Below are positions 30,919 through 63,805 of a stretch of 64,000 nt of DNA, piece by piece (the stretch's first letter is position 1; each line of letters opens with the position of its first letter). Under the pieces are notes generated by a model, which was not told the origin of the DNA, ran no database searches, and worked only from the letters and a program-made list of their open reading frames with translations. The stretch spans positions 9,734,001 to 9,798,000 of the forward strand of contig OZ249438.1 of NCBI GenBank assembly GCA_965235115.1, in the 5' to 3' direction. Source of the DNA: Laetmonice hystrix (taxonomy: Eukaryota). The translations under genes and the position numbers were made by a program.

Positions 30919-31377
30919 CAGCCCTGATTGCGGCGTCAGTATTGATGTGATTAGTGTATGTTAACCATGAGGTTGTGCGGTTGTTCACGTGGTCCCTCTC
31001 TCTCTGTCTCCAGGTGGACGGACCCACTGGACCAGCCCTGATTGCGGCGTCAGTATTGATGTGATTAGTGTATGTTAACTATGAGGTTGTGCGGTTGTTC
31101 ACGTGGTCCCTCTCTCTGTCTCCAGGTGGACGGACCCACTGGACCAGCCCTGATTGCGGCGTCAGTATTGATGTGATTAGTGTATGTTAACCATGAGGTT
31201 GTGCGGTTGTTCACGTGGTCCCTCTCTCTCTGCCTCCATGTGGATGGACCCACTGGACCAGCCCTGATTGCGGCGTCAGTATTGATGTGATTAGTGTATG
31301 TTAACTATGAGGTTGTGCGGTTGTTCACGTGGTCCCTCTCTCTCTGTCTCCAGGTGGACGGACCCACTGGACCAGCC
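30919..31377 (+). repeat. 112-114-bp array x4 spanning the acceptor of exon A
   Basis: each unit ends ...ccctctctctctgtctccag|gtggacggacccactggaccagcc; exon-like starts at 31014, 31126, 31240 (AG changed to AT) and the real start at 31354. Confidence 0.95.
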
Positions 31378-31520
31378 AGTGCCGGACGCCGGCCGGATCC
31401 GGGTCCAGGACGGTCGACTCTACATGACCAACCTCCAGCCGGACGACTCGGGTAACTACACGTGTACGGCACAGAACATCGCCGGTACCCGCCAGGCCAG
31501 CGTCTGGGTCGTCGTTTCAG
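31354..31520 (+). CDS. PTK7: PTK7-like receptor exon A (second half of Ig4)
   Basis: Pyrimidine tract + ctccag|G acceptor, tcag|gtaggt donor; 167 nt (phase 2 to phase 1). Encodes WTDPLDQPVPDAGRIRVQDGRLYMTNLQPDDSGNYTCTAQNIAGTRQASVWVVVS with the Ig DxGxYxC motif; resembles human PTK7 Ig4 as recalled (..DAGVYTCHAANLAGQRRQDVNITVA). Confidence 0.9.
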
Positions 31521-31920
31521 GTAGGTGACACGTGATAGGGTGACACGTGGTGGGTGACACGTGGAGGGGTCACACGTGGTGGGTGACACGTGATGAGGTG
31601 ACACGTGATAGGGTGACACGTAGTGGGTGACACGTGATAGGGTGACACGTGATGGGGTGACACGTGATGGAGGGACACTTGGTGGGGTAGCACGTGGTGG
31701 GGGTAACACGTGATGGCTTGACACGGGGGGCACGTGATGGGTGACACGTGGTGGGGATACATAGCGGAGACTCGTGGTGTGACACGTGGTAGGTGACACG
31801 TGACAGGTCACGTGATTGTGGACACGTGACGGGTCACAATATGTGACACATGATGCCATGGGAACACGTGCCAGAGATTTGACAAGTGACATTTTGTCCC
31901 GTGGTGGGAACACGTGATGG
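31521..31920. repeat. degenerate gtgacacgtg array starting at the exon A donor
   Basis: about 19 CACGTG hexamers by my count. Confidence 0.85.
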
Positions 31921-32039
31921 GTAAAGTGGTCAGGTTGATTGAACACGGGGTTATGCCCCTTGCTCAGCGCGACAGCGAGTCCCAAAAGGCCCCAAAAGGC
32001 AATATGTCTGGGTTGAGGAAATGCAATGAGATATGCCTT

Positions 32040-32420
32040 GTGGGCTAGACCTGCCCCGGCCTGTACTGACTGCAGTCCACATACTCCACCCTCACTCCAC
32101 CCTGCCCTGGGACCCTGGCCTTGTGGGCTAGACCTGCCCCGGCCTGGACTGACTGCAGTCCACATACTCCACCCTCACTTCACCCTGCCCTGGGACCCTG
32201 GCCTTGTGGGCTAGACCTGCCCCGGCCTGGACTGACTGCAGTCCACATACTCCACCCTCACTCCACCCTGCCCTGGGACCTGCCCCGGCCTGGACTGACT
32301 GCAGTCCACATACTCCACCCTCACTCCACCCTGCCCTGGGACCTGCCCCGGCCTGGACTGACTGCAGTCCGCACGCCCCACCCTCACTCCACCCTGCCCT
32401 GGGACCCTGGCCTTGTGGGG
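32040..32420. repeat. 83-bp repeat with shorter variants, ~5 copies
   Basis: gggctagacctgccccggcctggactgactgcagtccacatactccaccctcactccaccctgccctgggaccctggccttgt at 32042, 32125, 32208. Confidence 0.9.
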
Positions 32421-33074
32421 ACAACAATTACATTGTCACCATGAAACCACAAGGACAACCAACTCTAACAGTCCCAGATATTTACGACATTGTGGACCGT
32501 CATATTGCAGCTTCACTAATGAAAGTAATCTTCTTCTATTTTTGATTAATCTACCCTCAAAACACTGAAAAAGGTGCCGTATGAAAGCTTCATTAGCGCA
32601 GTCCGCAGGTTGCCATGGGAGAGCCACTGAAGCTGTCGTTCTAATATCAGCCGTAATTACTTACACTTAGATCACACTCCGTAATGTGCAAGAATTAATT
32701 GCGAGAGAAAATTGAATTTTTCACATATAATTGGACGGTGGGAGAGGTTTGGGTTGAGACAATGGCTTTGTGTTCCACGTGTGACGGAGGGGTCGGGCCG
32801 CCCATCACTCGGCCGACCAGTTTGGGGCGTAATGATATGAACATTTAACACCTGTGTGATGACTTCATGTGCTATCATCGTGTTTGATCAGCATTACGGC
32901 CGGGGTCGGGCGGAGAGTCGGGCCAGCCGGTGTCTATATGGGCCGCCACTGATTGAGTTTATCAACGTCTCTCAGACCAGCCTCCACCGAACAAAGCAGG
33001 GGCCGGCAAAATGGTGGCCTAATAAGTAAGGGTGGGGGTGGGGGGTGGGGGGTGGCCAAAACAGAGCTTCGTTC

Positions 33075-33650
33075 GGTCAGGGCTACGTCATGGCCTGCAA
33101 CACTGGACGGAAACAAGTAGGTCAGGGCTACGTCACGGCCTGCAACACTGGACGGAAACAAGTCGGTCAGGGCTACGTTATGGCCTGCAACACTGGATGG
33201 AAACAAGTTGGTCAGGGCTACGTCACGGCCTGCAACACTGGACGGAAACAAGTCGGTCAGGGCTACGTCATGGCCTGCAACACTGGATGGAAACAAGTCG
33301 GTCAGGGCTACGTTATGGCCTGCAACACTGGATGGAAACAAGTCAGTCAGGGCTACGCCATGGCCTGCAACACTGGACGGAAACAAGTCTGTCAGGGCTA
33401 CGTTATGGCCTGCAACACTGGATGGAAACAAGTCGGTCAGGGCTACGTTATGGCCTGCAACACTGGATGGAAACAAGTCTGTCAGGGCTACGTCACAACC
33501 TGCAACACTGGACGGAAACAAGTCGGTCAGGGCTACGTCACGGCCTGCAACACTGGATGGAAACAAGTTGGTCAGGGATATATCATGGCCTGCTACACTG
33601 CACGGAAACAAGTCAGTCAGGGCTACGTCACAGCCTGCAACACTACCTCA
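33075..33650. repeat. 45-bp minisatellite, ~13 copies
   Basis: ggtcagggctacgtcatggcctgcaacactggacggaaacaagtc. Confidence 0.95.
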
Positions 33651-35019
33651 CGGCTTGCAACCCGGGATGGAAACATCTTGGTCATTTCCGTGTCAGACAA
33701 TGTTCGTCGATCGACGTATTCCATTTTTCATCATATTACCACGTTCGTTTTCTTTCCACTCCTCTCTACGAAAAGTAATGAAACGCGCTAAATGTAAAAC
33801 GTTATATAAAAAGTCAGACAGGGAAAGTCATTTTGTTGAACGAGCACGGTGAAAATATGGACTGCTCCCTACTGCCTAGCATTATATGGTCGAAATTTAT
33901 TAAGTATAAAATCTCAGCCGACAAAAATTTCCGAAAAATCTCTAAGGATAACTCTGTTAGAAGTAGGCGGCGGCCGGATGATGATGGGATGTAGTTAAGC
34001 CCCCCCCCCACCATCCACTGACTCCTTCAGTACCGTCAGTGTTGTAGAGAGTGATTGACACTACATTAAACTACCTATTTGTCAGCTCTTGGTATTATTT
34101 CATTTTTAATGTGTACTCCACGGATGATGGCCTCCAGAGCGCAAATTGATTCATAGTTTTTGAGAGGCTGCCGTGGTCCGATGTCATGTGGAACCGCAAT
34201 TGTGTAATCTTTTAGATTAATTATCAAGAAATGCATCTTAAAAATGATCGAATTTCAATTCTGATTAATTATGTTTAATGAAAAATGTACCCCCCGTGTG
34301 GGTACTCCAAGGTGCTGAAGGCAACGCCCTCTCAAGGCCGGGAGGGATACGAAATGTGGGTCAGTGGTTCTGGTGCTACCCATGGAACTTTTAATTAGCA
34401 TAATTATTTGTAATACCTCCTGCAGCGCGCGGACCGTGGGCCCCCCTCACCTGGACCGGGCCGGGTGCTGAGCCCGGTCCTGTACGAGCCTTATCGGGCT
34501 GGGGCCGGCCCGGCCTGGCCCGTATCTCCGGGACACGACCGTGCGGATCGCTTTGTTTCCCGGCATTATAATATCAATTGTTACTTGGCCTTGTTATTGC
34601 CACTGTCTACGGCTTCTCTTTGTGCTGGGCAGTTCGTTTGTTTGCAGAGTTGAGGCTCTGGCACCGAGAGTGTAAAACAAGTGGCTTAGCCCCAACTCTC
34701 CGCCGAGACCCTTCCTTATCGGCCTCAGGCAGCGGGAGCGGCGCGGCCAGGGCAACCAGGGAGTTGGGAGAACTTTATGATCTGACTCACAGCACACACA
34801 GCACCGTGCTGGGACGGCGGCGGCTAGGGCCGGCCTCCCCTTGCTGGAGATAAGGCCGCAGGCTGCGTCAGGGTAAGGCCCGCACCCCCAGCTCTCCGTG
34901 GACGGGGCTCGTACCCCTACTCCGAGAGTCCCCGGAGTCGCAGTGGCTTCAAGATCTACATTTCCTGCAGAGTCCTCCGCTCGGTACCTTCCGCACTCTG
35001 TCCTCCGGTCTTACCCCTC

Positions 35020-35590
35020 ATAGCCATGGGTCTCACCCCTCATAGCCATGGGTCTCAACCCTCATAGCCACGGCTCTCAACCCTCATAGCCATGGGTCTC
35101 ACCCCTCATAGCCATGGGTCTCACCCCTCATAGCCATGGGTCTCACCCCTCATAGCCATGGGTCTCACCCCTCAAAACCATGGGTCTCACCCCTCATAGC
35201 CATGGGTCTCAACCCTCAAAACCATGGGTCTCACCCCTCATAGCCATGGGTCTCACCCCTCATAGCCACTGGTCTCATCCCTCATAGCCATGGGTCTCAC
35301 CCCTCATAGCCATGGGTCTCACCCCTCATAGCCATAGGTCTCACCCCTCATAGCCATGGGTCTCACCCCTATAGGCCATGGGTCTCACCCCTCATAGCCA
35401 TGGGTCTCACCCCTCATAGCCACGGGTCTCACCCCTCATAGCCATGGGTCTCACCCCTATAGGCCATGGGTCTCACCCCTCATAGCCATGGGTCTCATCC
35501 CTCATAGCCACGGGTCTCACCCCTCATAGCCACCGGTCTCACCCCTCATAGCCATGGGTCTCACCCCTCATATCCACCGGTCTCAACCCA
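35020..35590. repeat. 22-bp minisatellite, ~26 copies
   Basis: agccatgggtctcacccctcat. Confidence 0.95.
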
Positions 35591-36199
35591 CTCATCCTCC
35601 CTCACCGTCGTCCCCGTCCTGAGGGCCAGCAGCTAGCCACAAACCTCCTTTATCTACCCACATCGGGCAGCAAGCCGTGAAATTGGAAATTCCACCCGGG
35701 CTTTTTATCAGTTTTGATGATTGCCTTGCTTAATTAGTTGAAGTTGATTGTTGTTAGGGTGTTGAGTGTATTTGGTTTTCAGGCTGATGGCCTCGTCAGT
35801 GCCCGCAGAGAGGGGAGGAGATTGTGGTTTTTGTAAGATCCTTTACATTGTCCGCTGGGGAACATTTCAGCTTAACAGGAATTTGTTTTTCAACCTCGCT
35901 GTCAGCACATAGGACCGTTTGTTTGGAGTGTCAACTCTACTCTGGGACTAGGAATTAGGTTATTTAGTGAACATCTCAAAACCAAAAAATGACAGTTTGA
36001 TAAGCTATAATTAAAAGATAAGGAACATCAGAATTAATAATTCTGACTCAGAATTTCTGTCACGTCACCATGGCAAGAAGTCGAGGAAAATGATTTTATA
36101 ATATACAAGAGCCCCGGGCTGTTTTAAGTGTGGTTTACTGTAAATGATTGTAATGAGTCATAAATAAATGTGATCTCCTCATGGGGATTGTTTGAATGG

Positions 36200-36365
36200 T
36201 CCACGAAATATTGGGCGAAAGTAAAGATCCATAGCCCTGACGTTATCCCTAACCCCAAACCCTGGTCCCTATACCTCCCAAAAACATATCCCCTATCCCT
36301 ATCACTGACCTTAACCCGAACCCCTGCCAAAGATTTTGTAGGGAAGTTATCATGGGGGAATAATC
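36200..36365. mobile_element. dispersed non-autonomous element, copy 1
   Basis: shares ccacgaaat...agtaaag.tccatagccctgac.ttatccctaac...ccctatccct...gaccttaacccgaaccc...ggaagtta.catgg..gaataa with 51930-52115. Confidence 0.65.
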
Positions 36366-36936
36366 TACGAAAGAGGGCAAACACTTGAGATGATACAGCA
36401 AGACACCCGCGTACCGGGACAATATCATACTCGTTTCAATAAGTGGCAAGGGTTCCCTAACTTTTAACACACAACATCTGGGCTTTGATAACCCAGTCGA
36501 GGACACTAGTTGGGCGGACTGCGCGCGTTAAACACCTACTACTCACTCACTCACTCACCGATAGCGGGGAACAAACCAGTTGATCTTGAAAGTGATCAGA
36601 TGACTGAGATGGGGCAGGCACACGGAGCAGAATGCTGGTATATGGCAGTCAGGAAAGTTTGGAGACAGCCGGAGACGATATGATCAACCTGGAGGGTTGT
36701 ACGTGGTTTATACGTATTGACGACTCATAGTACAATCACACCCAGGGTAAAGTCTCCAGATCAGTTCGGAAACTGAATGGTTTCCAAGGCAGGACAGTGG
36801 AGACTGGGGTTCTCCATCAGTTGGTATGGAGTGTACGTAGGGCGTATGTACCTTTGTTTATCTTGTCGGGTCCTCCCTGAGCTGGTCGTCCTGCCCGCTG
36901 GCCGCTGGAGGGGGATAGTGGACCCGGAGGGCTGTC

Positions 36937-36940
<4 letters not shown>

Positions 36941-36992
<52 letters not shown>
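36941..36992. repeat. (AG)n microsatellite, ~26 units
   Basis: uninterrupted AG run. Confidence 0.98.
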
Positions 36993-36993
<1 letters not shown>

Positions 36994-39900
36994 CAGAGGA
37001 GCAGACCCCTCTATCCAGAGCCGACTCGGTGGGGCGAGTCTACCCACTGTCCGTCAGTTTATATCGCCAACATTGGCCATGATAAGACCGCCGGACCCCG
37101 GCTCGTGTGTAGCTATAGGGCAGGATCCCGGGACGCCCGTCCTCCAGGGTGGGGGCGATGGTGGTGGTGGGATCCCCAGTCCTCCCAGCGACCTGTCTCT
37201 GTCCGGCCTCAGAGCCCCATCACACACAAGGGCCAGACTTAAGGGTATACTGATAGACTTTAACAACGGTTGTCATGACAGCGGCCGGCTTGACAGTAGA
37301 CCCCGAGGTGCAGTCCTCTAGACACTACAGGCCGCCGTTACCATGGTAACCAAACATGATCCGTGTTTGTTATTGGGGTCCTGGGACCGGACCGGGGACG
37401 GTGGAGGGTCCTCATTACATGGACATCGATAGAGGTGATCCTACACAGGGCGTCCAGAGAATCAATGGTACCAATGTTGTGGTTGTTATATATTGAGATA
37501 TATTTCATGTCGCAATGTTAAACCTGGAATTGGCATTGTCAAAGTAAATGGTGGATAGCCCAATGGAGATCGCTATATGATTTGTTTGTGTTATTAAATA
37601 TTTGGTATTATTCTAGGACCGCAGCGGTTTCCCGGCCACGATTGGTCACTTCTCCGTCACGTGACTACGAATAAGCCATTCGTGATTCGGGGCGAATCGG
37701 GGCCCGTCAGAAACAAAAACTATGGCTCGTAACTATGAAGTTAGTCATAGTGATCATAAAATAAAACAAAATATAACACTTGCTAGGGTGGAATATGAGA
37801 ATTTATTGCACGTCGAAAATTAATATTACACTCCGTCTCACGTAATATAATATCAGTGTCGGATGTATGATGAGTTTTCATAGTTACCTTTAACAAGTGC
37901 TATAATTGTATGATAAGGCGCACATATTATTTCTGATATGGCTTGTTCACAGCGATGTAGCCAAATAAAGAGACATGAAAACGGCCTCCCTTGGCGACGG
38001 TTTCCTCTATAGATGGGCACATCGTACAAAGATTCTGTGACTTATGGCACAGTAACATAAACCCGTCTAGTAATTCAAATAAATTATGGACCCGGTCTGG
38101 GCTGTATTAACCGCAAGTAAAAATACAATTCAGATAAACGACCGTAAAATTGTATGACAGACTAGAGTCGTCCCATATGTCATCCTCCAGTCTGGAGAGT
38201 TTTTTGTTCTCATGAGATCTTCCAGAGTTATATATGCAGGCTGATGCCAAGGTGACTTGCGTTTGTACATCTGGAAAAGGGAAGGCATTTATTGCGAGTA
38301 ATTCCCAGTGGATCCTAATTTAAAACAGACTTGTTTTTTTCTAACTTGATTAGATATAAGGAACGCAATTTATAATTCTTATGCTGTCATAGACATACAA
38401 AATATGAAAGACTCAGCTGTTTTTTTGCAGTGGGCGAACTATGCCTGAGGAACCCTAGCAGTAGTTTACCATACAATGTTCTTGGCCCGTCAACTGCAGG
38501 CTGTGCAAATCATGACTCTCTTAACCCCTGGAACTTGTTAGAGTAGTCTCCTCGTCGGAGTTCTTGGAACTTGTAACACTAGCCAGCGGCCAGTGCATTC
38601 AGTGCTTCAGCAAACTGTCAGGAGTGAAGGCAGCCAGTCAGTCATTCAACCAGTCAGCCAGTCATTCAGCCAGTCAGTGGTTCTTTGAGGCATGCTCTGT
38701 CGGTATGGTTCGGACGGATGATGCACATTCTGGAATGTCATGCAATTCGACATCGATCAAATCCAGAACTGCATGGACATCCTGGTAAAGAATAGCGAAT
38801 CCACCAGTAAGTCATAGGAAACCATGTTACGTGGTTTTTACATGCGATAGTTTTTCTATGGCTCTGAGTCCTGTCTTCAAGGAACACCTGACAACTACAA
38901 AAGTTGCCACGTCATGGCAGACGACATTCGGTAAGCAACGTCTTGACAGAGTGAAAACTATGTGTTCTGTCGTTTATGGGTTTGGTTGGGGGGGGGGGGG
39001 TTGTTTCTTGGTCGGGAAGAATTCTTTGTGTGTTCTGAGGTCTGATATGGTCGGCCATGGGTGGAGACACGTGTTGGGAGCACATGTTGGGGACACGTGG
39101 AGGACACACCGTCTGGGCCGGGTACGTCTCTGTCCTGTCCGCCACCCACAGTTGTATATAGACCGACACCACCCCGTCAACATCTCAGAGTTTAGGGTGA
39201 AATCTATACACGCACCCCCTCCAACACATGCCGAGATGGAGAAATATAATAGATTTTGAAGGAATATATGTGACCGACATCCAAAATAAGGTCATCCTTA
39301 AGACATGCGTGAAATTCTTCTCATTGGCTCACTAAGTGACGTTCGGCAATCAAAAAAGAAAAAAAAGAATACCTCAATCATCATAATTATGCCCTGCAGG
39401 GGGTCGTCTTACTGAAGTCGTCTAACTTAGCAAGCAGTAATTGACTCAGTGAGGGAACCGCACGCTAATGAAGAACGTTATTAACTAGCGGACACTTATT
39501 CATTTATGTACAGGTTAATGGTATGAGAATTAACGATCTTTTAGACGCTCGGGCGGGGTGATGTTTTCAAGCTGGTCGATGTTATGCACGACATGGCATA
39601 TTGACCGGGTCATCCCGAATTCACTTAGGTTTAAACGGACGACCACTGAAGGCGGACCATATGTACTGGGTCACGTGTCTTTAACCTCACAGGAAGTCGT
39701 ATTTTGTTTATGCTGACATCATTTGTAGTTATTTAGATTCGTGAGTATGTATTAGCTGCATGCTTACCAACATTCTGAAGTCGGCAGGCGGGAAAACAAA
39801 ACATCACTTCTGTTCAGGTACCACACGTATTATAGGCCTCCGTAGTGTGTGGGCGCGGTTGATCATTTCGCAAATCTCATCCATTGCTTAAACAGCGAAA

Positions 39901-40544
39901 ACAAGTTATTCCGTGAATCACAGATGGACAAGATCTTCATACAAAATTATTGTGGAACCTGAACTTTGTGACATTTCAAGGAGAAAGGTCATTCGTTGTG
40001 TACCACACATTGCTTTGAATCAGACAATGTCATATGACTTCGAGCATCAGTAACGACGCGTGGTAAAGGGCGGCCGTTGAACCAGTGTGGCTTCTGTACC
40101 GGCGATACGCTTTCCTGCGAACCGGTCGTTTATTGGCTATAGAGCGACGCCGGATATGACGTCAGAAGGGCTGAAGAGAAGACACGCCGTCGTCAAATCG
40201 TTGTTGATTTGTCACAGCTAGCGCCAGATCCTATTGATTTGTCGCAGCTATTGTTGGGGTTCTTTTGTCGCAGTTACTGTCGGATCCCATTGATTTGTCA
40301 CACCTATTGTTGATGAAATATGTGCCAAGTCGCGTTCTACATTTAGCGGTCTCTAATAGGAGATGGGCATGCCATATTGTATGTATGCTGCGTGTCTGAT
40401 TGTATTCGGACTGTGATTGGCTGGAGGTGATCGGATGTCCGGAGGGAAGACCGACCAATCAGCGGCCAGGTCAGGACCGGCCGGTGGGAATGTAAGATTC
40501 CACACGGAAAGTTACCTTACACCGTAATCTTCAGTGTCATCCAT

Positions 40545-42250: not shown

Positions 42251-42626
42251 NNNNNNNNNNNNNNNNNNNNNNNNNNNNNNNNNNNNNNNNNNNNNNNNNN
42301 NNNNNNNNNNNNNNNNNNNNNNNNNNNNNNNNNNNNNNNNNNNNNNNNNNNNNNNNNNNNNNNNNNNNNNNNNNNNNNNNNNNNNNNNNNNNNNNNNNNN
42401 NNNNNNNNNNNNNNNNNNNNNNNNNNNNNNNNNNNNNNNNNNNNNNNNNNNNNNNNNNNNNNNNNNNNNNNNNNNNNNNNNNNNNNNNNNNNNNNNNNNN
42501 NNNNNNNNNNNNNNNNNNNNNNNNNNNNNNNNNNNNNNNNNNNNNNNNNNNNNNNNNNNNNNNNNNNNNNNNNNNNNNNNNNNNNNNNNNNNNNNNNNNN
42601 NNNNNNNNNNNNNNNNNNNNNNNNNN
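42251..42626. other. assembly gap (376 N)
   Basis: run of N inside the A-B intron; exons A and B join in phase and in domain order, so no coding exon needs to lie in it. Confidence 0.99.
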
Positions 42627-44175: not shown

Positions 44176-44699
44176 AGACCAGTTGGGAAGTTGGGAATGG
44201 GAGGGGGTCGGTCTCCCCGAGCCGACACTGTCCGACTCTGGATTCAGCGACAGAGTAGTGCATGCGCTTCAAGGCATGCGCTCAGTCGTGTGTAATGAGT
44301 ATTCAGTACATGCTGCTCCCCCCACCGATGTAGGTTAAATGTTTTTCTACTTTTGTAACAGAGAAAAGAATCGCTGGTGAATTATTCATGATGACAAAAT
44401 GAATGCCAAGCGACAGAACTGTATCTAAATGTGGTCATGTGACGTTTCCGTTTGATGCTATATCTCCACATTACAGCGATCCATCCCACATATTATGCAA
44501 ACATGAACCGGAATTGATTCTAAAACATATTCAGGCAGAGCAGTGAAATGACACTGGGCATCCACGGTAGCAGCAATCCAGGAGGTTGGGAGGAAAATTA
44601 AAGACAAGATGTGCATTTGGAATCATTGTTTAGTGTTCTAGAAGTTGGGCTAAAGAAATGGGCATATTGGATATTTGCTCGGTATGTGCCATATAATGC

Positions 44700-45000
44700 C
44701 AATTGTTTGATCTATGACAGTGCCATGGCGCCCGTTGTTTGACCTGTTCCAGTGCCATGACGCCCATTGTTTGACCTATTACAGTGCCATGACGCCCATT
44801 GTTTGACCTATTACAGTGTTACACTGCCATAATCCCAAATGTTTGAACTATTGCAGTGTTACAGTGCCATAATCCCACATGTTTGACCTGTTACAGTGTT
44901 ACAGCACCTATTCTGTGGTTACAGTGCCATAATCCAAAATGTTTGACCTATTGCAGTGTTACAATGCCATAATTCCAACTGTCTGACCTGTTACAGTGCC
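44700..45000 (+). repeat. degenerate ~31-39-bp array of the exon B acceptor
   Basis: about 8 copies of tgtttgacct(g/a)tt(a/g/c)cag|tg ending in the real ctgacctgttacag|tgcc. Confidence 0.85.
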
Positions 45001-45133
45001 GCCAGTGATCAGCCAGACTCCCCTCAGTAGCCGCGTGAAGGAGGGCGGCGTGGCAGAGTTCGACTGTAAGGTGACGGGCACCCCTTACCCCGTCACAACC
45101 ATCACCTGGCGCAAGGACGACCGGCCCATTGAT
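44997..45133 (+). CDS. PTK7: PTK7-like exon B (first half of Ig5)
   Basis: ttacag|TG acceptor, gat|gtgagt donor; 137 nt (phase 1 to 0), in phase with exon A. Encodes (V)PPVISQTPLSSRVKEGGVAEFDCKVTGTPYPVTTITWRKDDRPID with Ig B-strand Cys and C-strand Trp. Not in the ORF track. Confidence 0.9.
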
Positions 45134-45560
45134 GTGAGTACTCGACCATTGATGTGATTACTGGTCCATTGGTGTGATTCCTGCCTCTTGATGTCAGTAC
45201 CCGCCCATTGATGTGATTATTGGTCCATTGGTGTGATTATTGGTTCATTGGTGTGATTCCCCGCCTATTGATGTCAGTATCCGCCCATTGATGTGATTAT
45301 TGGTTCATTGGTGTGATTATTGGTTCATTGGTGTGATTCCCCGCCTATTGATGTCAGTATCCGCCCATTGATGTGATTATTGGTTCATTGGTGTGATTAT
45401 TGGTTCATTGGTGTGATTCCCCGCCTATTGATGTCAGTATCCGCCCATTGATGTGATTATTGGTTCATTGGTGTGATTCCTCGCCTATTGATGTCAGTAT
45501 CCGCCCATTGATGTGATTATTGGGCCATTGATGTGAGTACCCGTCTCGTGATGTGAGTAT
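45125..45560 (+). repeat. array of the exon B donor
   Basis: repeated ccattgat|gtga(g/t)ta; intact GTGAGT copies at 45134 (real), 45533 and 45553. Confidence 0.88.
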
Positions 45561-47645: not shown

Positions 47646-47864
47646 ACTGGATGAAGTTAAAACTTGCATCAAGCTGGACACAGTGATGACAGGTGTAGAG
47701 GTTGGAAAGGCAGCGGCTGTCAGCTTACCGCGCCCCACCCTCAACACTGACGATCGGGTGTGTGAAAACGATGGTCGGGAGGGAGGGCTGACGACACCCC
47801 GCCGCCCTGATGTTACGGTGTCAGTCTGCCGCCGGTCATGAAATCACGGGGGAAGTCTGCTCAC

Positions 47865-48315
47865 TGTCGTGACATCATGGTTACAGACCGCTCACCATTG
47901 TGACGTCACGGGTAGAGTCCGCTCACCGTCGTGACGTCATGGTTACAGACCGCTCACCATTGTGACGTCACGGGGAGAGTCCGCTCACCGTCGTGACGTC
48001 GCGGTTAGACCGTTCACCATTGTGACGTCACGGGGTGAGTCTGCTCACCATCGTGACGCCATGGTTACAGACCGCTCACCATTGTGACGTCACGGGGAGC
48101 GTCCGCTCACCGTCGTGACGTCATGGTTACAGACCGCTTACCATTGTGACGTCACGGGGAGAGTCCGCTCACCGTCGTGACGTCACGCTTACAGACCGTT
48201 CACCATTGTGACGTCACGGGGTGAGTCTGCTCACTATCGTGACGCCATGGTTACAGACCGCTCACCATTGTGACGTCACGGGAGAGTCCGCTCACCGTCG
48301 TGACGTCACGGGGAG
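47865..48315. repeat. ~62-bp (2 x 31) minisatellite rich in TGACGTCA
   Basis: ggttacagaccgctcaccattgtgacgtcacggggagagtccgctcaccgtcgtgacgtcat. Confidence 0.92.
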
Positions 48316-49476: not shown

Positions 49477-49764
49477 GTTCAGTTGTTGACTGACCAGTGT
49501 GTTTTGCCCCTGTTCCAGTTCAGTTGTTGACTGACCAGTGTGTTTTGCCCCTGTTCCAGTTCAGTTGTTGACTGACCAGTGTGTTTTGCCTCTGTTCCAG
49601 TTCAGTTGTTGACTGACCAGTGTGTTTTGCCGCTGTTCCAGTTCAGTTGTTGACTGACCTGTGTGTTTTGCCGCTGTTCCAGTTCAGTTGTTGACTGACC
49701 AGTGTGTTTTGCCTCTGTTCCAGTTCAGTTGTTGACTGACCAGTGTGTTTTGCCTCTGTTCTAG
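49477..49764 (+). repeat. 41-bp array x7 of the exon C 3' splice site
   Basis: gttcagttgttgactgaccagtgtgttttgcc(c/t/g)ctgttcca, starts at 49477 + 41n; the last copy ends ttctag at the real acceptor. Confidence 0.95.
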
Positions 49765-49915
49765 ATGAGCCACCCTCGGTTCAAGGTCGACCCGGAGGAA
49801 GGCCGGCTGACCATCACTAACGTCCACCTCAATGACGAGGGTTACTACGCATGTGACGTCAACACCACTGGACACCCTGTCAAGTCGTCCACCAACGCCC
49901 ACCTTTACGTCATGA
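49765..49915 (+). CDS. PTK7: PTK7-like exon C (second half of Ig5)
   Basis: ttctag|ATG acceptor, catga|gtaagt donor; 151 nt (phase 0 to 1). Encodes MSHPRFKVDPEEGRLTITNVHLNDEGYYACDVNTTGHPVKSSTNAHLYVM (DEGYYAC motif). Confidence 0.9.
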
Positions 49916-50084
49916 GTAAGTCCGCGTCTGCGATGTCACTTACAGAGAGAGGGTGGGGTCCGGGGGTGCAGTGAGGGCGGGGAACTGAGTGACCTCTTTA
50001 TTTTGTTGTGGGCCTCATGATTGTGTTCACACAAATTTATAGGAGCTATTTTTTTTGCTTTTTATAACAATAATCTACTCTTCC

Positions 50085-50640: not shown

Positions 50641-50745
50641 CTTCCAGTTCTCCGTGGGAGAACTTTCAGTTCTGCCAGGAACACCTGGGCAGGTCCCTGT
50701 TGCTGACATCGTGCCATGGGGTCGCTATCAGATGATAGAGACCTG

Positions 50746-51494: not shown

Positions 51495-51782
51495 AGCTGC
51501 TCAAGTTCAGACCGACGCCCGTCAACACCAAACTGGAGCTGGGCTCCACCTCCAAGATCCACTGTAAGGCGGAGGGCCAGGCCGTACCGACCATTCGCTG
51601 GTTACCGGGCGGGGGTGGAGGGAACGGTGCAGGTCAAGTCGGAGACTTCCCGTCTCACATCCAGGACGTGGCTGGTGTACTCATCTTTAGCGGGGTCCGA
51701 CATACGGACGCCGGGTACTTCACCTGTGTGGCGTCCAGTAGCCAGGGCCTCATCAACGCCACAATCTACGTCGAGGTGGTCG
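51495..51782 (+). CDS. PTK7: PTK7-like exon D (complete Ig6)
   Basis: ttttcacag|AG acceptor, gtcg|gtgagt donor; 288 nt (phase 1 to 1). Encodes (K)LLKFRPTPVNTKLELGSTSKIHCKAEGQAVPTIRWLPGGGGGNGAGQVGDFPSHIQDVAGVLIFSGVRHTDAGYFTCVASSSQGLINATIYVEVV; resembles human PTK7 Ig6 as recalled (KLKFTPPP...PTIKW...DNAGTLHF...DAGNYTCIASN). Confidence 0.92.
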
Positions 51783-51929
51783 GTGAGTGGATATTGTGCT
51801 GACAGAGGGGGGGGGGGTGGCAAAAGTCAAATTTAAGTTTTATGGTGGACCCTTAAAAAATTGTGTGTGTGGGGGGGGGGGGGTGTTGCCCTACCCCTAT
51901 TCCAACCTAACTGACCCGGTATATCCCCT

Positions 51930-52115
51930 GTTATAACTTCAATCCCACGAAATTTTGTCGGAAGTAAAGCTCCATAGCCCTGACCTTATCCCTAACTCCT
52001 AACCTGGTCCCTACACCCCCCAAAGACATAATATCCCTATCCCTATCCCTGACCTTAACCCGAACCCTTACCCAAAGGTTTGGTCTGGGACTGGAAGTTA
52101 CCATGGCGGAATAAC
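51930..52115. mobile_element. dispersed non-autonomous element, copy 2 (MITE or Helentron-HINE-like)
   Basis: homologous to 36200-36365; short imperfect inverted ends ataacttcaatccc / gggactggaagttac; internal ccctaac/ccctat low-complexity tract. Confidence 0.6.
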
Positions 52116-52277
52116 CACTGACCATACATACCGTACCGAACGTGGTTTAAGCCATGTGGGTCCCTCATCATTTCACATGGGCCCTCCTCTCTGCCACACC
52201 TGGGGCCCTAACCTCCGAAACTACATTGGCCTGTCCCTCCGTTCAATCCAGCTAGGCCCCTTCCTCCATCAAAGATC

Positions 52278-52762
52278 AAGTTTTAACGACTATATTTGAT
52301 TAATTAATCATGATGTCATTACATGAACCGCTCCTCCTCTCTCCGACAGTCAAACCCAAGTTTTAACGTCTATGTTTGATTAAGTAATCATGATGTCATT
52401 ACATGAACCGTCCCTCCTCTCTCCGACAGTCAAACCCAAGTTTTAACGTCTATGTTTGATTAAGTAATCATGATGTCATTACATGAACCGTCCCTCCACT
52501 CTCCGACAGTCAAACCCAAGTTTTAACGTCTATGTTTGATTAAGTAATCATGATGTCATTACATGAACCGTCCCTCCTCTCTCCGACAGTCAAACCCAAG
52601 TTTTAACGTCTATGTTTGATTAAGTAATCATGATGTCATTACATGAACCGTCCCTCCTCTCTCCGACAGTCAAACCCAAGTTTTAACGTCTATGTTTGAT
52701 TAAGTAATCATGATGTCATTACATGAACCGTCCCTCCTCTTTCCGACAGTCAAACCCAAGTT
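52278..52762 (+). repeat. 80-bp array x6 spanning the acceptor of exon E
   Basis: ...acatgaaccgtccctcctctctccgacag|tcaaacccaagtt; AG ends at 52349, 52429, 52509, 52589, 52669 and 52749 (real). Confidence 0.96.
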
Positions 52763-52901
52763 CAAGGTGAAACCAGCCAACACGACGGCGTATGAAGGCT
52801 ATCCCATCATGCTTCACTGTGTGGCTACAGGAGATCCCACCCCGACCATTCAATGGGACAAGAACAGTAAAGTGAACTCCTTCGACAAGTCCAGGTTCAA
52901 G
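52750..52901 (+). CDS. PTK7: PTK7-like exon E (first half of Ig7)
   Basis: ccgacag|TC acceptor, aag|gtaaga donor; 152 nt (phase 1 to 0). Encodes (V)KPKFKVKPANTTAYEGYPIMLHCVATGDPTPTIQWDKNSKVNSFDKSRFK; resembles human FKVEPERTTVYQG...LQCEAQGDPKPLIQW. Confidence 0.92.
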
Positions 52902-55349: not shown

Positions 55350-56020
55350 GTCAGACTGACTGTGATATCAGACTGACCGTGATATCAAACTGACCGTCAT
55401 AATCAAACCACCGTCATATCAGACTGACTGTGATATATCAGACTCACAGTCACGGTGGCCAGTCCATTAACAGACTAACACTGATATCAGACTTCATACA
55501 ATATCAAACTGACTGTCATATAGGCCTAAAACTGCCGGTCATAACAAACTGACTGTGATATCAAATTGACTGTGGCCAGTCCATTTATAGAGCAACCCTG
55601 ATACCAGACTGCATATGCCATCGAACTGACTATTATATCAAACTGAATGTGATATCAGACTGACTTATATCAGACTGACTGTTACCCAGTCCATTTATAG
55701 ACCAACCCTGATATAAACTGTCTATGATATCAAACTGACAAATATCAAACTGAATGCGATATCAGACTGACTGATATCAGACTGATTGATATCAAACTGA
55801 CACTGTTATACCCAGTCCATTTAAAGACCAACCTTGATAGAACAAGATTACAAGATAGACCAAGACTGACTGTGATGTCGTGATATCAGACTGATGATGT
55901 AGTCCCAGTATAGACCGACCTTTCCGTGATATCAAACTGACTGTGATATCAAACTGTGATACCGTGATATCAAAGTGACTGATATCAAACTGTGATACCG
56001 TGATCTCAGACTGACGGTAT
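55350..56020. repeat. degenerate gatatcagactgact array
   Basis: many dispersed tatca(g/a)actgac motifs. Confidence 0.75.
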
Positions 56021-56981
56021 AGACCGAGTCCCTCTCCCCGACGTCTGGGCGCCCGCCGGAGATGCTAGGCCGCCATTGTTTGACTTTAGATGATGGATGA
56101 CCCAGCAGCAGTTTGTGATTCATCCCCCATTGAAGTTAAAGACGGTTTACGGATCCTTACGTGGTTCAGCGAACATGAACTCAGAGAACAGTTCTATTAG
56201 CCAGCTAATGACTCCAGGCCATTAGCCGTGTTCCTTGCCACAACTGAAACATTATATGTGAGCGCTATGATAATTGAAGGACTGATTTACTGGAGCAAAA
56301 TATCGCATTTATATTCATCAGTGTCACTAGTGCTGGCATGAAGGAAAGTGGCGTTTTTACATGCGAATTCATCAGGAATCCGTCAACCTAAACTATAGCT
56401 CAGAGCTTTCAGAGGAGCCGATCTGGGATGTAAACATGAGCCCCACTGAGATGTTTGATTGCAGTTTTAAAACATAACATTGCTGAGTTGTAGTCCATCA
56501 CCACCAATCATTCAGCAGAGATTGAAAGTTTCTCGGTTTTTCATCTGAGTTGGAAAGATTTAGTGCCGCCCGCTTGAGTATGGGTGGCTTTAAAAGGGTT
56601 CAACAGCAGATAAAGTCTGTTCAGCAAGTTCATGTCGCGAAATCAGTTTGGGGACAATTTATGGGGGTGTTGTAGGCGACTTTTATCATACTTGGTCGCG
56701 CTTGACTTGGCCACATGCTTTCAATCTTTCACATAATCATTTTTGTGAATTCAGGCGGAGTTGAAATGAAGATGCACAATGGGCCGGTGCTAGGCCCAGC
56801 GTGGCCCAGGGCCGGCCACCCGTCACGCGGCCCTGGGCCGGCCATCCGTCATCGGCCTTCACGGTCGAGGACGTGTGTTCTTCACCTCCTGGGTGGGCCA
56901 GTGGGTGGGTGGGTGGGTGGGGGCGGCAGATACAGGAGGACACCCTCCTGCTCTTCTTTTACCTCCTGCTCATCCTCTTCT

Positions 56982-57050
56982 CCTCCTCCTCCTCCCCCTC
57001 CTCCTCCTCCTCCTCCTCCTCCTCCTCCTCCTCCTCTTCCTCCTCCTCTT
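56982..57050. repeat. (CCT)n microsatellite
   Basis: imperfect cct run. Confidence 0.95.
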
Positions 57051-57734
57051 TCTCCAGGGAGGTTGGCAAGGTTCAGACTACTCCATGTCAGGGAGATTGG
57101 AAAAGCTGAGACTAATTCGTGTCAGGGAGATTGGCAAGGCTCAGGCTACTGAACTTTCGAAGAACTCGAACCACTTTATGTCAGGGGGATTAGCAAAGTT
57201 CAAATTGTTTTATGTCAGAGAGTTTGGAAGAGTTCGGACTGGTTTATTTCAGTTTATTTAGTTTGGAAAACACATTCTTTAGCAAAAACGGGAGAACGCC
57301 AGTCATTAAATTTGTCGAGACCTATTTTGTCTTTCTACCTTCAGTTGTATCCCTCACAGCAGTTTGCCACGTCATGCCTAGATGACAAAACTTTGCCACA
57401 TCTCTATCAGATGATTGACATTTTTTTGTTTTTACTCGTTCATATTTCACAGCAGTCTGTGCTAGCGGTTATGAAGCATGAAGCGGTAATCCGATAAAAA
57501 CCATATCGAATAGTTGTCCCTCCCTGGGGGAACGTGTGCTTTGTGGATAATACATCTTCCGCCTGATTGTCCACTTGAAGAGGAAATGGAAGATCAAATT
57601 ATGGAAATCTATTGCCTTTGAGTATCTTCAATTAGAGAGCTGGACGGTTGGAGACCTGTGTAATGTCGCACTGATTGATTCTCAACCGTCCGTCCCTGAT
57701 TCACAGCCTCCAGCGGCTGCGAGTCCCGGCGTTA

Positions 57735-58516
57735 GGGTACTGATCGTTGGAGACGTGGGTTTAGACCAGATAACCGGGCATAGGGCGCAGTCTGAGTGCG
57801 GGTACTGATCGTGGGAGACGTGGGTTTAGACCAGATAACCGGGCACAGGGCGCAGTCTGAGTGCGGGTACTGATCGTTGGAGACGTGGGTTTAGACCAGA
57901 TAACCGGGCATAGGGCGCAGTCTGAGTGCGGGTACTTATCGTTGGGGACGTGGGTTTAGACCAGATAACCGGGCACAAGGCGCAGTCTGAGTACGGGTAC
58001 TGATCGTTGGAGACGTGGGTTTAGACCAGATAACTGGGCACAGGGCGCAGTCTGAGTACGGGTACTGATCGTTGGGGACGTGGGTTTAGACCAGATAACT
58101 GGGCACAGGGCGCAGTCTGAGTGCGGGTACTGATCGTTGGAGACGTGGGTTTAGACCAGATAACTGGGCACAGGGCGCAGTCTGAGTGCGGGTACTGATC
58201 GTTGGAGACGTGGGTTTAGACCAGATAACCGGGCACAGGGCGCAGTCTGAGTGCGGGTACTGGTCGTTGGAGACGTGGGTTTAGACCAGATAACCGGGCA
58301 CAGGGCGCAGTCTGAGTGTGGGTACTGGTCGTTGGAGACGTGGGTTTAGACCAGATAACTGGGCACAGGGCGCAGTCTGAGTGCGGGTACTGATCGTTGG
58401 AGACGTGGGTTTAGACCAGATAACCGGGCACAGGGCGCAGTCTGAGTGTGGGTACTGGTCGTTGGAGACGTGGGTTTAGACCAGATAACCGGGCACAGGG
58501 CGCAGTCTGAGTACGG
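57735..58516. repeat. 65-bp minisatellite x12
   Basis: gggtactgatcgttggagacgtgggtttagaccagataaccgggcacagggcgcagtctgagtgc. Confidence 0.96.
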
Positions 58517-58609
58517 GTTGGTTGTGGATGAGAGCTGTAGGTGTAGAAAACATCGGAGCGAGGTGTCTTCCCGATATAACTAGTCAGCCTCCGTGGCGGG
58601 GTGTGATCC

Positions 58610-58820
58610 AGGTTAGAGTGTGCATGGACGGGGTGTGACCCCCCTCCAGGTCGGGGTGTACATGGACGGGGTGTTACCCCCCCCCCCTCTAGCCCAGGTC
58701 GGGGTGTACATGGACGGGGTGTGACCCCCCCCCCTCCAAGTCTCCAGGTTAGAGTGTCCATGGACGGGGTGTGACCCCCCTTCCAGGTTAGAGTGTCCAT
58801 GGACGGGGTGTGACCCCCTT
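58610..58820. repeat. ~35-40-bp degenerate repeat
   Basis: ccaggttagagtgtccatggacggggtgtgaccccc. Confidence 0.8.
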
Positions 58821-59304
58821 ATATTTACTATAACAGTCGGGTGTCCTCACTGTTGTCTTAGATCCAATGGATGATGGCGCTGAGTACCATTAGTGTGGTG
58901 ATCAGTCATGAGCCAGGATCAAACCGTTACCGATGACCGCCCGCCCTCACACAGCGAACGACTGATCAGTAGGACAGGCACGGTCACCCACACAAATAGC
59001 TTCTCACCCGACGCCTCTAACGTTAAGTCAGGTTAGATTAGGGGCAATATTAGGCCCGCCAGCAGGGGTTTAACTGCAGATATCCCCGGGACAGTCAGTG
59101 GTAGAGATTATCACCTGCAGTTCTATTTAAAGTGATTAGGTTATTGTAATGGTCCATTTTATTGTTGCGGCCAATCAGGGCGTAATCTGGCTGAAATCAG
59201 TATGTTATTGTGTAGAGGTCAGTGCCCAGCGTGTGGGATTTGAGAATGGGATTACGGGTTTGTGGATGTGATATTTCATCATATGAGGACCCCCCATCAA
59301 CTAA

Positions 59305-60045
59305 ACCTGACTGGTCAGCTAACACAACCTGACTGGTCAGCTAACACAACCTGACTGGTCAGCTAACACAACCTGACTGGTCAGCTAACACAACCTCACT
59401 GGTCAGCTAACACAACCTCACTGGTCAGCTAACACAACCTCACTGGTCAGCTAACACAACCTCACTGGTCAGCTAACACAACCTCACTGGTCAGCTAACA
59501 CAGCCTCACTGGTCAGCTAACACAACCTCACTGGTCAGCTAACACAACCTCACTGGTCAGCTAACACAACCTCACTGGTCAGCTAACACAACCTCACTGG
59601 TCAGCTAACACAGCCTCACTGGTCAGCTAACACAGCCTCACTGGTCAGCTAACACAGCCTCACTGGTCAGCTAACACAACCTCACTGGTCAGCTAACACA
59701 GCCTCACTGGTCAGCTAACACAGCCTCACTGGTCAGCTAACACAACCTCACTGGTCAGCTAACACAACCTCACTGGTCAGCTAACACAACCTCACTGGTC
59801 AGCTAACACAACCTCACTGGTCAGCTAACACAACCTCACTGGTCAGCTAACACAGCCTCACTGGTCAGCTAACACAGCCTCACTGGTCAGCTAACACAAC
59901 CTCACTGGTCAGCTAACACAACCTCACTGGTCAGCTAACACAACCTCACTGGTCAGCTAACACAACCTCACTGGTCAGCTAACACAACCTCACTGGTCAG
60001 CTAACACAACCTCACTGGTCAGCTAACACAACCTCCCTGGTCAGC
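59305..60045. repeat. 22-bp minisatellite, ~33 copies
   Basis: ctggtcagctaacacaacctca. Confidence 0.97.
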
Positions 60046-60639
60046 ACCATTTTGCTACCTCTCAGGGTGTCCCACCCTCAGTTTCATGGTAATGTGTGAA
60101 AACTAAAACCCCACATCTTTGCATGATGCTTTGATTTTCATCTCATATACCATAATGAACAAAGGTCCCCAACATGAGTTGAAAGACACAGAGCGCTGGT
60201 GGCTGGCGGTACGACATGCCGTTGACGAGCCACTGACGACAAACGGCCCTTTTGGTGGTCCGTAGATAACGGATGGGTTATTTCTATGATGTCGACATAT
60301 GAGGGTGGACTGGCAAATCTGAGCGCCACACAAAGGTGACCTTGTGGGGCGGGAGGCGCGGCATTTTGTCTGAGCAACAGTTGTCTGTGATCAGCAGAGG
60401 CTGAGTCAGAACCCCCCTACCCCCACCCCAGTGGACCCCCACCCAGTGGACCCCCACCCAGTGGACCCCCACCCAGTGGACCCCCACCCAGTGGACCCCC
60501 ACCCACCCCCACCTCACCCACTCCTCTCTCCGCACTGTGAAGGCAACACGTTGATGCTCACCCAGATATGTGCATATCCTTCCATCAGCAACCACCATCA
60601 ATATCGATGGCAAAACATGTTGGCCCAGTTTGGCGGCTT

Positions 60640-60672
<33 letters not shown>

Positions 60673-61184
60673 CGTTCCTAATAAGGCCAGCGCCAACTGT
60701 AAGCGCACATCGATCACACAGGTCGGTCACCTCCACTAAACTCAGCCAGCGATCAAACAGGGCCAATCGAGAGTCTGAAAATGACGAAAAGTGGAATGAA
60801 GCCGGACATCGGGACCTCATGATGCCTTTATCGTGTTACCTATAACACATGAGCCCGTTCATAGCAAGTCTGTTTTATAACATGTGTAAAACTTGAGGTG
60901 GCATTAAAGGTTTCGTAATATCTCCCTCTCCCCATATATACGGTTAACTTCTCCAGCAGGTAATTGGCCTGCCCTGAGAGGGACATTTACGATATCGCGA
61001 TAACTTTATACGGTAACGTTCCGCTGGATGCACAAGTCAAAGTGGTAATGGCTGATGTAAGTTATGGCGGTCTGAAGTCATCAAGTGTGGGTGACACTGA
61101 GTGTGGCAGTGAGAAATCCACAGCAGTGACGGCCCTTTGGGGACGCCACGTAGCTTGGAGGCCTTGTGTGCGCAGTCACTGAGC

Positions 61185-62947
61185 TTTACCCGGTGTGGCC
61201 AGTCACTGAGCCTTGCCTGGGGTGGCCAGTCACTGAGCCTTGCCCGGTGTGGCCAGTCACTGAGCCTTGCCCGGTGTGGCCAGTCACTCAGCCTTGCCCG
61301 GTGTGGCCAGTCACTGAGCCCTGCCCGGTGTGGCCAGTCACTCAGCCTTGCCCGGTGTGGCCAGTCACTCAGCCTTGCCCGGTGTGGCCAGTCACTCAGC
61401 CTTGCCCGGTGTGGCCAGTCACTGAGCCTTGCCCGGTGTGGCCAGTCACTGAGCCTTGCCCGGTGTGGCCAGTCACTAAGCCTTGCCCGGTGTGGCCAGT
61501 CACTGAGCCTTGCCCGGTGTGGCCAGTCACTGAGCCTTGCCCGGTGTGGCCAGTCACTGAGCCTTGCCCGGTGTGACCAGTCACTGAGCCTTGCCCGGTG
61601 TGGCCAGTCACTGAGCCTTGCCCGGTGTGACCAGTCACTGAGCCTTGCCCGGTGTGGCCAGTCACTGAGCCTTGCCCGGTGTGACCAGTCACTGAGCCTT
61701 GCCCGGTGTGGCCAGTCAGTGAGCCTTGCCCGGTGTGGGCAGCCACTGAGCCTTGCCCGGTGTGACCAGTCACTCAGCCCTGCCCGGTGTGACCAGTCAC
61801 TCAGCCTTGCCCGGTGTGGGCAGCCACTGAGCCTTGCCCGGTGTGGCCAGTCACTCAGCCCTGCCCGGTGTGGCCCACTCAGCCTTGCCCGGTGTGGCCA
61901 GTCACTCAGCCTTGCCCGGTGTGGCCAGTCACTCAGCCTTGCCCGGTGTGGGCAGTCAGTGAGCCTTGCCCGGTGTGGCCAGTCACTCAGCCCTGCCCGG
62001 TGTGGCCAGTCACTCAGCCTTGCCCGGTGTGGCCAGTCAGTGAGCCTTGCCCGGTGTGGCCAGTCACTCAGCCTTGCCCGGTGTGGCCAGTTACTGAGCC
62101 TTGCCCGGTGTGGCCAGTCACTCAGCCTTGCCCGGTGTGGCCAGTTACTGAGCCTTGCCCGGTGTGGCCAGTCACTCAGCCTTGCCCGGTGTGGCCAGTC
62201 ACCGAGCCTTGCCCGGTGTGACCAGTCACTCAGCCTTGCCCGGTGTGGCCAGTCACTCAGCCTTGCCCGGTGTGGCCAGTCATTGAGCCTTGCCCGGTGT
62301 GGGCAGCCACTGAGCCTTGCCCGGTGTGACCAGTCACTCAGCCTTGCCCGGTGTGGCCAGTCACTCAGCCTTGCCCGGTGTGGCCAGTCACTGAGCCTTG
62401 CCCGGTGTGGCCAGTCAGTGAGCCTTGCCCGGTGTGGGCAGCCACTGAGCCTTGCCCGGTGTGACCAGTCACTCAGCCTTGCCCGGTGTGGCCAGTCACT
62501 GAGCCTTGCCCGGTGTGGCCAGTCACTCAGCCTTGCCCGGTGTGGCCAGTCACTGAGCCTTGCCCGGTGTGGCCAGTCACTCAGCCTTGCCCGGTGTGGC
62601 CAGTCACTCAGCCTTGCCCGGTGTGGGCAGTCAGTGAGCCTTGCCCGGTGTGGCCAGTCACTCAGCCCTGCCCGGTGTGGCCAGTCACTCAGCCTTGCCC
62701 GGTGTGGCCAGTCAGTGAGCCTTGCCCGGTGTGGCCAGTCACTCAGCCTTGCCCGGTGTGGCCAGTTACTGAGCCTTGCCCGGTGTGGCCAGTCACTCAG
62801 CCTTGCCCGGTGTGGCCAGTTACTGAGCCTTGCCCGGTGTGGCCAGTCACTCAGCCTTGCCCGGTGTGGCCAGTCACTGAGCCTTGCCCGGTGTGGCCCA
62901 CTGAGCCTTGCCTGGTGTGACCAGTCGCTCAGCCTTGCCCGGTGTGG
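61185..62947. repeat. 27-bp minisatellite, ~65 copies, with 675-bp higher-order repeat
   Basis: gcccggtgtggccagtcactgagcctt. Confidence 0.97.
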
Positions 62948-63234
62948 CCGTAACTTCCCCTACCCCGATGCAGTCAAGCACGGGGTGGTCCCTTCCCTCC
63001 CTTGTAGACATCCTTCTACTATCACCCTTCCGCCTGGCCGGAGCAGTCCAAAGCTGGCCATGTCATGCAGGGATAAATAATAAGATGATTATGCTGCCAG
63101 GTTTGGTGAAGCGTCCAATTGGCGGGTTTGGAGACCGAGCGCCGTACGTAATTGATTATGACGTGTGATTGGTCATCCTCCTCCTGTAGGTGTCCGGTCA
63201 CGTGGTTCGGTTCGCGAGGTCGGGGCGGTTTTAG

Positions 63235-63805
63235 GTGTTGTGTGACGGGTCGCTGTATGTTTCAGGTGTTGAGTAACGGGTCGCTATAGGCTATGTTTCA
63301 GGTGTTTAGTAACGGGCCACTCTATGTTTTAGGTGTTGAGTAACAATATGTTTCAGGTGTTGAGTAACGGGTCGCTGTATGTTTTAGGTGTTCTGTGACG
63401 GGTCGCTATATGTTTCAGGTGTTTAGTAACGGGTCGCTCTATGTTTCAGGTGTTGAGTAACAATATGTTTCAGGTGTTGAGTAACGGGTCGCTGTATGTT
63501 TTAGGTGTTGAGTAACGGGTCGCTGTATGTTTCAGGTGTTGAGTAACGGATCGCTCTATGTTTTATGTGTTCTGTGACGGGTCGCTGTATGTTTTATGTG
63601 TTCTGTGACGGGTCGCTCTATGTTTCAGGTGTTGAGTAACGGGTCGCTGTATGTTTTATGTGTTCTGTGACGGGTCGCTCTATGTTTCAGGTGTTGAGTA
63701 ATGGGTCGCTCTATGTTTCAGGTGTTGAGTAACGGGTCGCTGTATGTTTCAGGTGTTGAGTAACGGGTCGCTCTATGTTTCAGGTGTTGAGTAACGGATC
63801 GCTGT
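63235..63805 (+). repeat. 31-bp array (~18 copies) spanning the acceptor of exon F
   Basis: atgtttcag|gtgttgagtaacgggtcgctgt; consecutive acceptor copies start at 63691, 63722, 63753 and 63784 (real). Confidence 0.95.

Follow-up and report, generated by a model that had tools for sequence, protein, structure and literature searches.

Why should the exons of one gene lie directly behind, or in front of, stacked copies of their own splice sites? This question is raised by a 64,000-nucleotide stretch of Laetmonice hystrix DNA (C3:9734001-9798000, in OZ249438.1, inside a 627-Mb assembly; hereafter the window), which holds six exons, A to F, of a PTK7 gene. We analyzed the window together with 100 kb of flank per side, called tandem arrays with Tandem Repeats Finder (TRF) and read the anatomy of each junction directly in the sequence. 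The acceptors of exons A, B, C, E and F were each found to be the final copy of a tandem array of their own, the five arrays being unrelated to one another, and the donors of exons A and B begin arrays; on both points, which had been made in a first-pass annotation of this stretch, the sequence reading and TRF agree. As argued below, these arrays are probably near-neutral minisatellites of the type called 'mirages' in amphioxus, seeded on the junctions and tolerated since the exon-proximal copy preserves the reading frame.

TRF returned 112 tandem-repeat rows in the window. Arrays cover 35% of it, close to the one-third estimated at first, and 43% of the span 30919-63805, for which that estimate was too low. 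The anchored arrays are head-to-tail, with units of 15-114 bp, 4-20 copies and 72-98% identity according to TRF (Table 1). At the acceptors, all five units bear a pyrimidine tract and the AG; in exon A, some 90 intron bases and the AG are joined to 24 exon bases, the units of exon B all bear ttacag followed by TGCC (four exon bases), and the unit of exon F joins 10 intron bases to 21-23 exon bases. At the donor of exon B, the unit joins the final 11-14 bases of the exon to GTGAGT, and the real donor lies in the first unit. Three more anchored junctions were found outside the span 30919-63805, namely at the acceptor of exon 13 and at the donors of exons 12 and 14. Both boundary types are accordingly affected within PTK7 (five to six acceptors and four donors), and at three junctions (C acceptor, A donor and exon 12 donor) the array comes to within 0-3 bases of the boundary. 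None of the junctions of the five upstream PTK7 exons lies inside an array, and two arrays there begin 20 and 47 bases past donors.

To locate the PTK7 exons, exon D was used to retrieve PTK7 proteins, against which the translated + strand was compared. Exons A to F are colinear at 31354-63904 (+) and match residues ~350-700 of the PTK7 homologues of Lingula, Tachypleus, Saccoglossus, Branchiostoma and insects; the flanks add nine exons, five upstream and four downstream, to give 15 in total. When only the exon-proximal sites are used, the 15 exons form a single open reading frame (ORF) of 991 amino acids with a stop codon at its end, and this model aligns with Lingula PTK7 from end to end at 49.7% identity. 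Because the exons join in one open frame and the alignment is complete, PTK7 looks intact. Judged by its sequence, the gene is a PTK7 orthologue, colinear with those of Lingula, Tachypleus and others. Lingula provides the best match, and the Ig part shares only 37% identity with Branchiostoma belcheri, the kinase part 59%; the animal is not an amphioxus, and its nearest PTK7 is that of the brachiopod Lingula. The intron between exons A and B contains an assembly gap. The end of exon A and the start of exon B occupy adjacent positions in homologues and the frame continues across them, so that the gap conceals no exon; it adjoins no exon and no exon-anchored array. A search of the genome for Pfam kinase domains listed 142 matches.

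Arrays of this kind might have been inflated or invented by the assembler. The E and C arrays, with 97-98% identity among copies, are of a type in which assemblers are prone to error, and the region contains the gap between exons A and B. We compared the arrays with contigs of three DNA runs from one sample, which is possibly the assembly's own source; short-read contigs of this type collapse arrays. The contigs support the unique flanks and the exons with ~1% differences, break at the array edges, and cover the array bins at 2-3 times the flanking depth, except that two bins inside the E array had no contigs and were uninformative. Moreover, the array copies bear ordered variants and higher-order periods (226 in A and 60/80 at the B donor), which argues against an invention of the assembler. 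Considering these results, an assembly artefact is very improbable. One DNA run alone differs from the assembly at five bases in and just after exon C (49839-49934), and the three runs disagree mutually at many sites despite being filed as one sample, which suggests high heterozygosity or pooled individuals.

A second alternative is pure coincidence, in which arrays simply cover about one-third of the intron DNA and show no bias toward junctions. The statistics below concern one gene, with 15 exons and 29 junctions. For 7 of the 29 junctions, the splice dinucleotide lies inside an array, compared with an array cover of 32% (P = 0.86), i.e. there is no gene-wide enrichment, and coverage was therefore rejected as a statistic for junction bias. 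Likewise, the probability of at least five of six acceptors lying in arrays, which had been put at about 0.02 in a binomial calculation, rises to ~0.06 at the measured local cover of 43%, and the five upstream exons without any junction in an array are in line with coincidence as well. However, coverage is the wrong null, because the splice sites predate the arrays and a site can be included only if the first duplication contains the junction; later expansion raises the cover without reaching further old positions. A null built from non-array positions only was also discarded, as it is ill-posed for sites within arrays.

Array edges give a different result. An array edge lies at most 10 intron bases or at most 35 exon bases from the boundary at 10 of the 29 junctions, compared with 4.1% of random positions (P = 1.4e-7), and P remained between 3e-8 and 4e-7 across windows from 3/25 to 50/50. 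In a seed model, in which each of 117 arrays was collapsed to one unit and the arrays straddling a junction were then counted, 1.9 straddling arrays were expected and 7-9 were observed (P = 0.003 to 0.0002). The density of edges is 7.7/kb within 25 bp of a junction and ~1.7/kb elsewhere, that is, 4.4 times the background. Array cover stays level at 35-43% as far as the exon edge, and inside exons it amounts to 2.8%; a mere removal of exon-crossing arrays is disfavored, because the cover should then drop toward the exon. The excess of array edges at junctions, ~4-5 times that of random placement, is therefore real, and coincidence becomes an improbable explanation. The bias toward junctions that had been proposed, tolerated where the extra copies fall on the intron side, fits the density of edges and fails in the coverage test; it may act on the birth of arrays or on their survival.

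The array units are of local origin, as shown by the exon's own bases inside units and by the C unit, which is found at no other place in the genome. The ends of units show 4-6 nt of microhomology (CAGCC in A and CAAGTT at both unit ends in E), as expected under slippage or microhomology-mediated tandem duplication. A mobile satellite inserted beside the exons was ruled out for the units that contain exon bases and for the genome-unique C unit. The 15-bp array at the A donor has weak look-alikes at ~6 other loci on C19, C20 and C7, and for this array the look-alikes leave room for a mobile-satellite origin. Palindromic CACGTG or TGACGTCA cores were observed in several array units (31524-31802, 47844-48311 and, in the downstream flank, L003:383-578).

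When the anchored arrays were compared with 107 interior arrays, no difference was found in unit length, copy number, identity or total length. No difference in age was seen by identity either, which is a poor clock under concerted evolution. The anchored arrays are ordinary members of the minisatellite population, odd only by their location. The density of minisatellites is strongly regional: arrays cover 20-46% within PTK7 and only 3-8% in two stretches downstream of it, C3:9814001-9834000 and C3:9874001-9898000.

For comparison with a related species we used the ENA assembly ERZ25767047, in which the exon proteins are 61-93% identical and 55 kb of the orthologous locus was walked. Eight junctions, all downstream of exon A, were compared: the acceptors of B, C, E, F and exon 13, and the donors of B, exon 12 and exon 14. 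All eight are single-copy in the relative, with identical intron positions, and TRF arrays cover only 2-6% of its sequence. Both the arrays and the wider flood of minisatellites thus arose in the present lineage after the split, and their absence from the relative represents turnover between species. Seven bases past its B donor, the relative carries a two-copy tandem duplication of 15 bp, at the same junction that bears a 20-copy array here; this is the only hint there of the same process. The C-E region of PTK7 lies on two contigs in the relative, which differ by indels and are either haplotypes or recent paralogues.

The same comparison bears on the suggestion that the arrays are intermediates in intron sliding or gain, formed when a segment with a proto-splice site is duplicated in tandem (the Rogers model). 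Consistent with this model, the A and F units start with AG|GT, the F unit resembles exon sequence beyond the 21 shared bases, and such a route has been proposed for amphioxus globins (PMC3087553). On the other hand, the intron positions at B, C, E and F and at exons 12 to 14 equal those of the relative. No intron has moved, because the positions match at all eight junctions, and this alternative of the first-pass annotation is not supported. In addition, the F intron of the relative ends in a similar ttatttccag, which indicates that the last 10 bases of the F unit are derived from the intron. Intermediates of intron gain or sliding are thus very unlikely. Recursive-splicing ratchet points were also considered and rejected: GT opens the units of A and F but none of those of B, C or E, and the donors rebuilt in this way, GTGGAC and GTGTTG, are weak.

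The extra copies in the arrays present the splicing machinery with many decoy sites. Decoys with an intact AG number 2 in the acceptor array of exon A, ~9 in B, 6 in C, 5 in E and 15 in F. In exon A, the decoy nearest the real acceptor has AG changed to AT. In exon C, the six decoys read ttccag and the real acceptor ttctag, so that the decoys (ccag) are nearer the consensus than the real tag. The decoys of the C, E and F acceptors match their real sites for 20 bases or more. The donor decoys are mostly degenerate (GTGGGT, GTGATT, GTCAGT): those of exon A are mainly the weaker GTGGGT, and most copies at the exon B donor have decayed to GTGATT or GTCAGT, intact GTGAGT being present only 399 and 419 bases downstream. 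Such weakening fits either decay or counter-selection. Tandem acceptors of the NAGNAG type do not offer a comparison, given a spacing of 31-114 bases in the present arrays.

It had been proposed that these sites are regulatory decoys, whose occasional use leads to an early stop and nonsense-mediated decay (NMD), with the array length tuning the dose of PTK7. Every traced acceptor decoy indeed meets a stop within 2-38 codons, and the stops named earlier were confirmed after the decoys of A (CCC TGA), C (TGT TGA), E (TTT TAA) and F (GAG TAA) as well as after the B donor decoy (ATG TGA); the match of the C, E and F decoys to their real sites would also suit such a role. However, an early stop, such as one within 2-13 codons, is unremarkable, as it is expected of any unconstrained sequence. 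The arrays are missing at all eight compared junctions of the relative and are hence not conserved, the anchored arrays are indistinguishable from interior ones, and the donor decoys are mostly weakened. In amphioxus, mirages were reported to leave normal splicing undisturbed, as determined by reverse transcription-polymerase chain reaction (PMC3087553). A regulatory role is accordingly unlikely, and we infer that the arrays are near-neutral by-products and not regulators.

Two observations concern individual splice sites. In the array of the exon 14 donor, a decoy 66 bases downstream is in-frame and stop-free, and its use would insert 22 residues in the kinase domain. At position 52745, 5 bases before the real E acceptor, all three DNA runs have T where the assembly has G (ccgacag to cctacag); this T would extend the pyrimidine tract of the real acceptor, and the contig that carries it ends 31 bases away.

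According to the reading that we prefer, i.e. minisatellites seeded on junctions, segments of 15-114 bp that spanned a junction (the splice signal and 0-24 exon bases) would have been duplicated tandemly in place and would then have grown to 4-20 copies, as part of a lineage-specific minisatellite population that occupies ~1/3 of the PTK7 introns. Their persistence may be explained by the position of the surplus copies on the intron side, while the exon-proximal copy retains the uninterrupted PTK7 frame; splicing at any other copy would add stop-bound sequence. The excess of edges at junctions implies that junctions either seed arrays more often or retain them longer. More births might result from breaks at transcription pauses at splice sites, or at the chromatin boundaries of exons. 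Longer survival might result if random deletions erase interior arrays but cannot remove anchored ones without damage to the exon. Both are put forward as proposals only.

Several points weigh against this reading. The acceptor decoys of C, E and F are locally equal or superior to the real site, and their neglect is unexplained. In classic work on competition in cis, proximity rules would prefer the upstream acceptor copy. The real acceptor is likely to be rescued by exon definition, through the body of the downstream exon and its donor. It is from the open frame that the exon-proximal sites are taken to be used and the decoys to be silent. As for the statistics, the window sizes of the edge test were picked after inspection of the data, and the excess comes from one gene. 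The 17 junctions outside the original finding give 2-6 anchored cases, with P = 0.07 to 0.003 according to the window size; these unselected junctions show the same trend in a weaker form, and their support is modest. A broader and more tentative proposal, which may hold but should not be presumed, is that junctions are true hot spots at which minisatellites are still being born across the whole genome, in an animal lineage unrelated to amphioxus.

Table 1. Exons, junction-anchored arrays and the assembly gap at the PTK7 locus (positions in the window)
Feature	Position	Strand	Description	Basis
Exon A acceptor array	30919-31377	+	114 bp x4, higher-order period 226	TRF and reading
PTK7 exon A	31354-31520	+	Second half of Ig domain	Homologue comparison
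Exon A donor array	31520-31802	+	15/29-bp CACGTG-containing units from the donor onward	TRF and reading
Assembly N gap	42251-42626	.	A-B intron, 2.4 kb upstream of exon B	Sequence reading
Exon B acceptor array	44698-44998	+	32-40-bp units, alternatively period 100	TRF and reading
PTK7 exon B	44997-45133	+	First half of Ig domain	Homologue comparison
Exon B donor array	45120-45560	+	20-bp unit, higher order 60/80	TRF and reading
Exon C acceptor array	49477-49764	+	41 bp x7, ends at AG	TRF and reading
PTK7 exon C	49765-49915	+		Homologue comparison
PTK7 exon D	51495-51782	+	Whole Ig domain; array-free at both junctions, internal control	Sequence reading, homologue comparison
Exon E acceptor array	52277-52762	+	80 bp x6, 98% identity, 13 exon bases per unit	TRF and reading
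PTK7 exon E	52750-52901	+		Homologue comparison
Exon F acceptor array	63228-63806	+	31 bp x19	TRF and reading
PTK7 exon F	63784-63904	+		Homologue comparison
Exon 12 donor array	Downstream flank		24-bp units starting at intron base 3	
Exon 13 acceptor array	Downstream flank		18-bp pyrimidine units, end 6 bases before AG, without decoy AG	
Exon 14 donor array	Window-equivalent 66898-67328		22-bp units with last 6 exon bases and donor	

Other repeats were observed in the region. The intron between exons D and E contains a dispersed repeat of ~200 bp (51918-52117), which is SINE- or MITE-like (short interspersed element or miniature inverted-repeat transposable element); a genome search gave more than 1,400 first-look candidates, and 39 scored copies were 85-93% identical. 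Long pure microsatellites lie in introns at 56962-57048, (CCT)29, and at 36941-36992, (AG)26. Downstream of PTK7, ORFs recur every ~6.3-6.8 kb and 2.5 kb (~C3:9803000-9816000 and C3:9833000-9862000), which suggests large tandem segmental duplications. The ORFs in the remaining 130 kb of flank revealed no clear genes.

If the pattern holds genome-wide, existing methods could test whether junctions draw tandem duplication to them or simply keep its products, how the choice of a splice site copes when many identical acceptors stand in a row, and whether the arrays feed intron or exon change. Should junctions prove to be hot spots, this genome would be tractable material for studying how mirages originate and how spliceosomes pass over as many as 15 identical decoy acceptors. 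The arrays also matter for annotation: gene predictors will face many equally good splice sites at such exons.

The architecture had been thought undescribed, which is incorrect, as tandem repeats across exon-intron boundaries have been published as 'mirages' in a handful of amphioxus genes (PMC3087553, PMC3902484) and a donor-spanning repeat is known in human F7 (PMC1557585). Mirages, which have been described one gene at a time in amphioxus since 2002 (Canestro et al. 2002, via PMC3087553, PMC3902484), have units of 10-160 bp at the 5' or 3' boundary; splicing was reported to be undisturbed, and their origin was termed unclear (PMC3087553, PMC3902484). In the literature searched, we found neither an explanation of their origin nor a genome-wide count. 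The present arrays resemble mirages in that boundary-spanning units carry the AG or GT, both boundaries are affected, several cases occur per gene and the gene is intact; unit sizes are also similar (15-114 bp here). They differ in belonging to another lineage, in being denser (9-10 of 29 junctions in one gene) and in that the excess has been quantified against random placement.

In human F7, a 37-bp variable number of tandem repeats (VNTR) occupies intron 7, with its first element spanning the exon 7 donor; the most upstream of several donors is selected by scanning, and the identical pseudo-sites were experimentally silent (PMC1557585). The B and exon 14 donor arrays are similar, since in each the end of the exon and the donor fall within the first unit, pseudo-donors follow, and the real donor is the most upstream one. 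Unlike these arrays, however, F7 is a single locus with identical pseudo-sites, whereas the pseudo-donors here are mostly degenerate. Introns or alternative splice sites have reportedly also arisen from tandem arrays or internal duplications, as described by Zhuo et al. in 2007, Gao and Lynch in 2009 and Rogers in 1989. The present arrays share with those cases the multiplication of splice sites in genes by tandem duplication, although those cases concern new or alternative introns and the intron positions here are unchanged with respect to the relative. The kind of structure is thus already known; what is new is its occurrence in a second lineage, its very high density within one gene and the measured excess at junctions.

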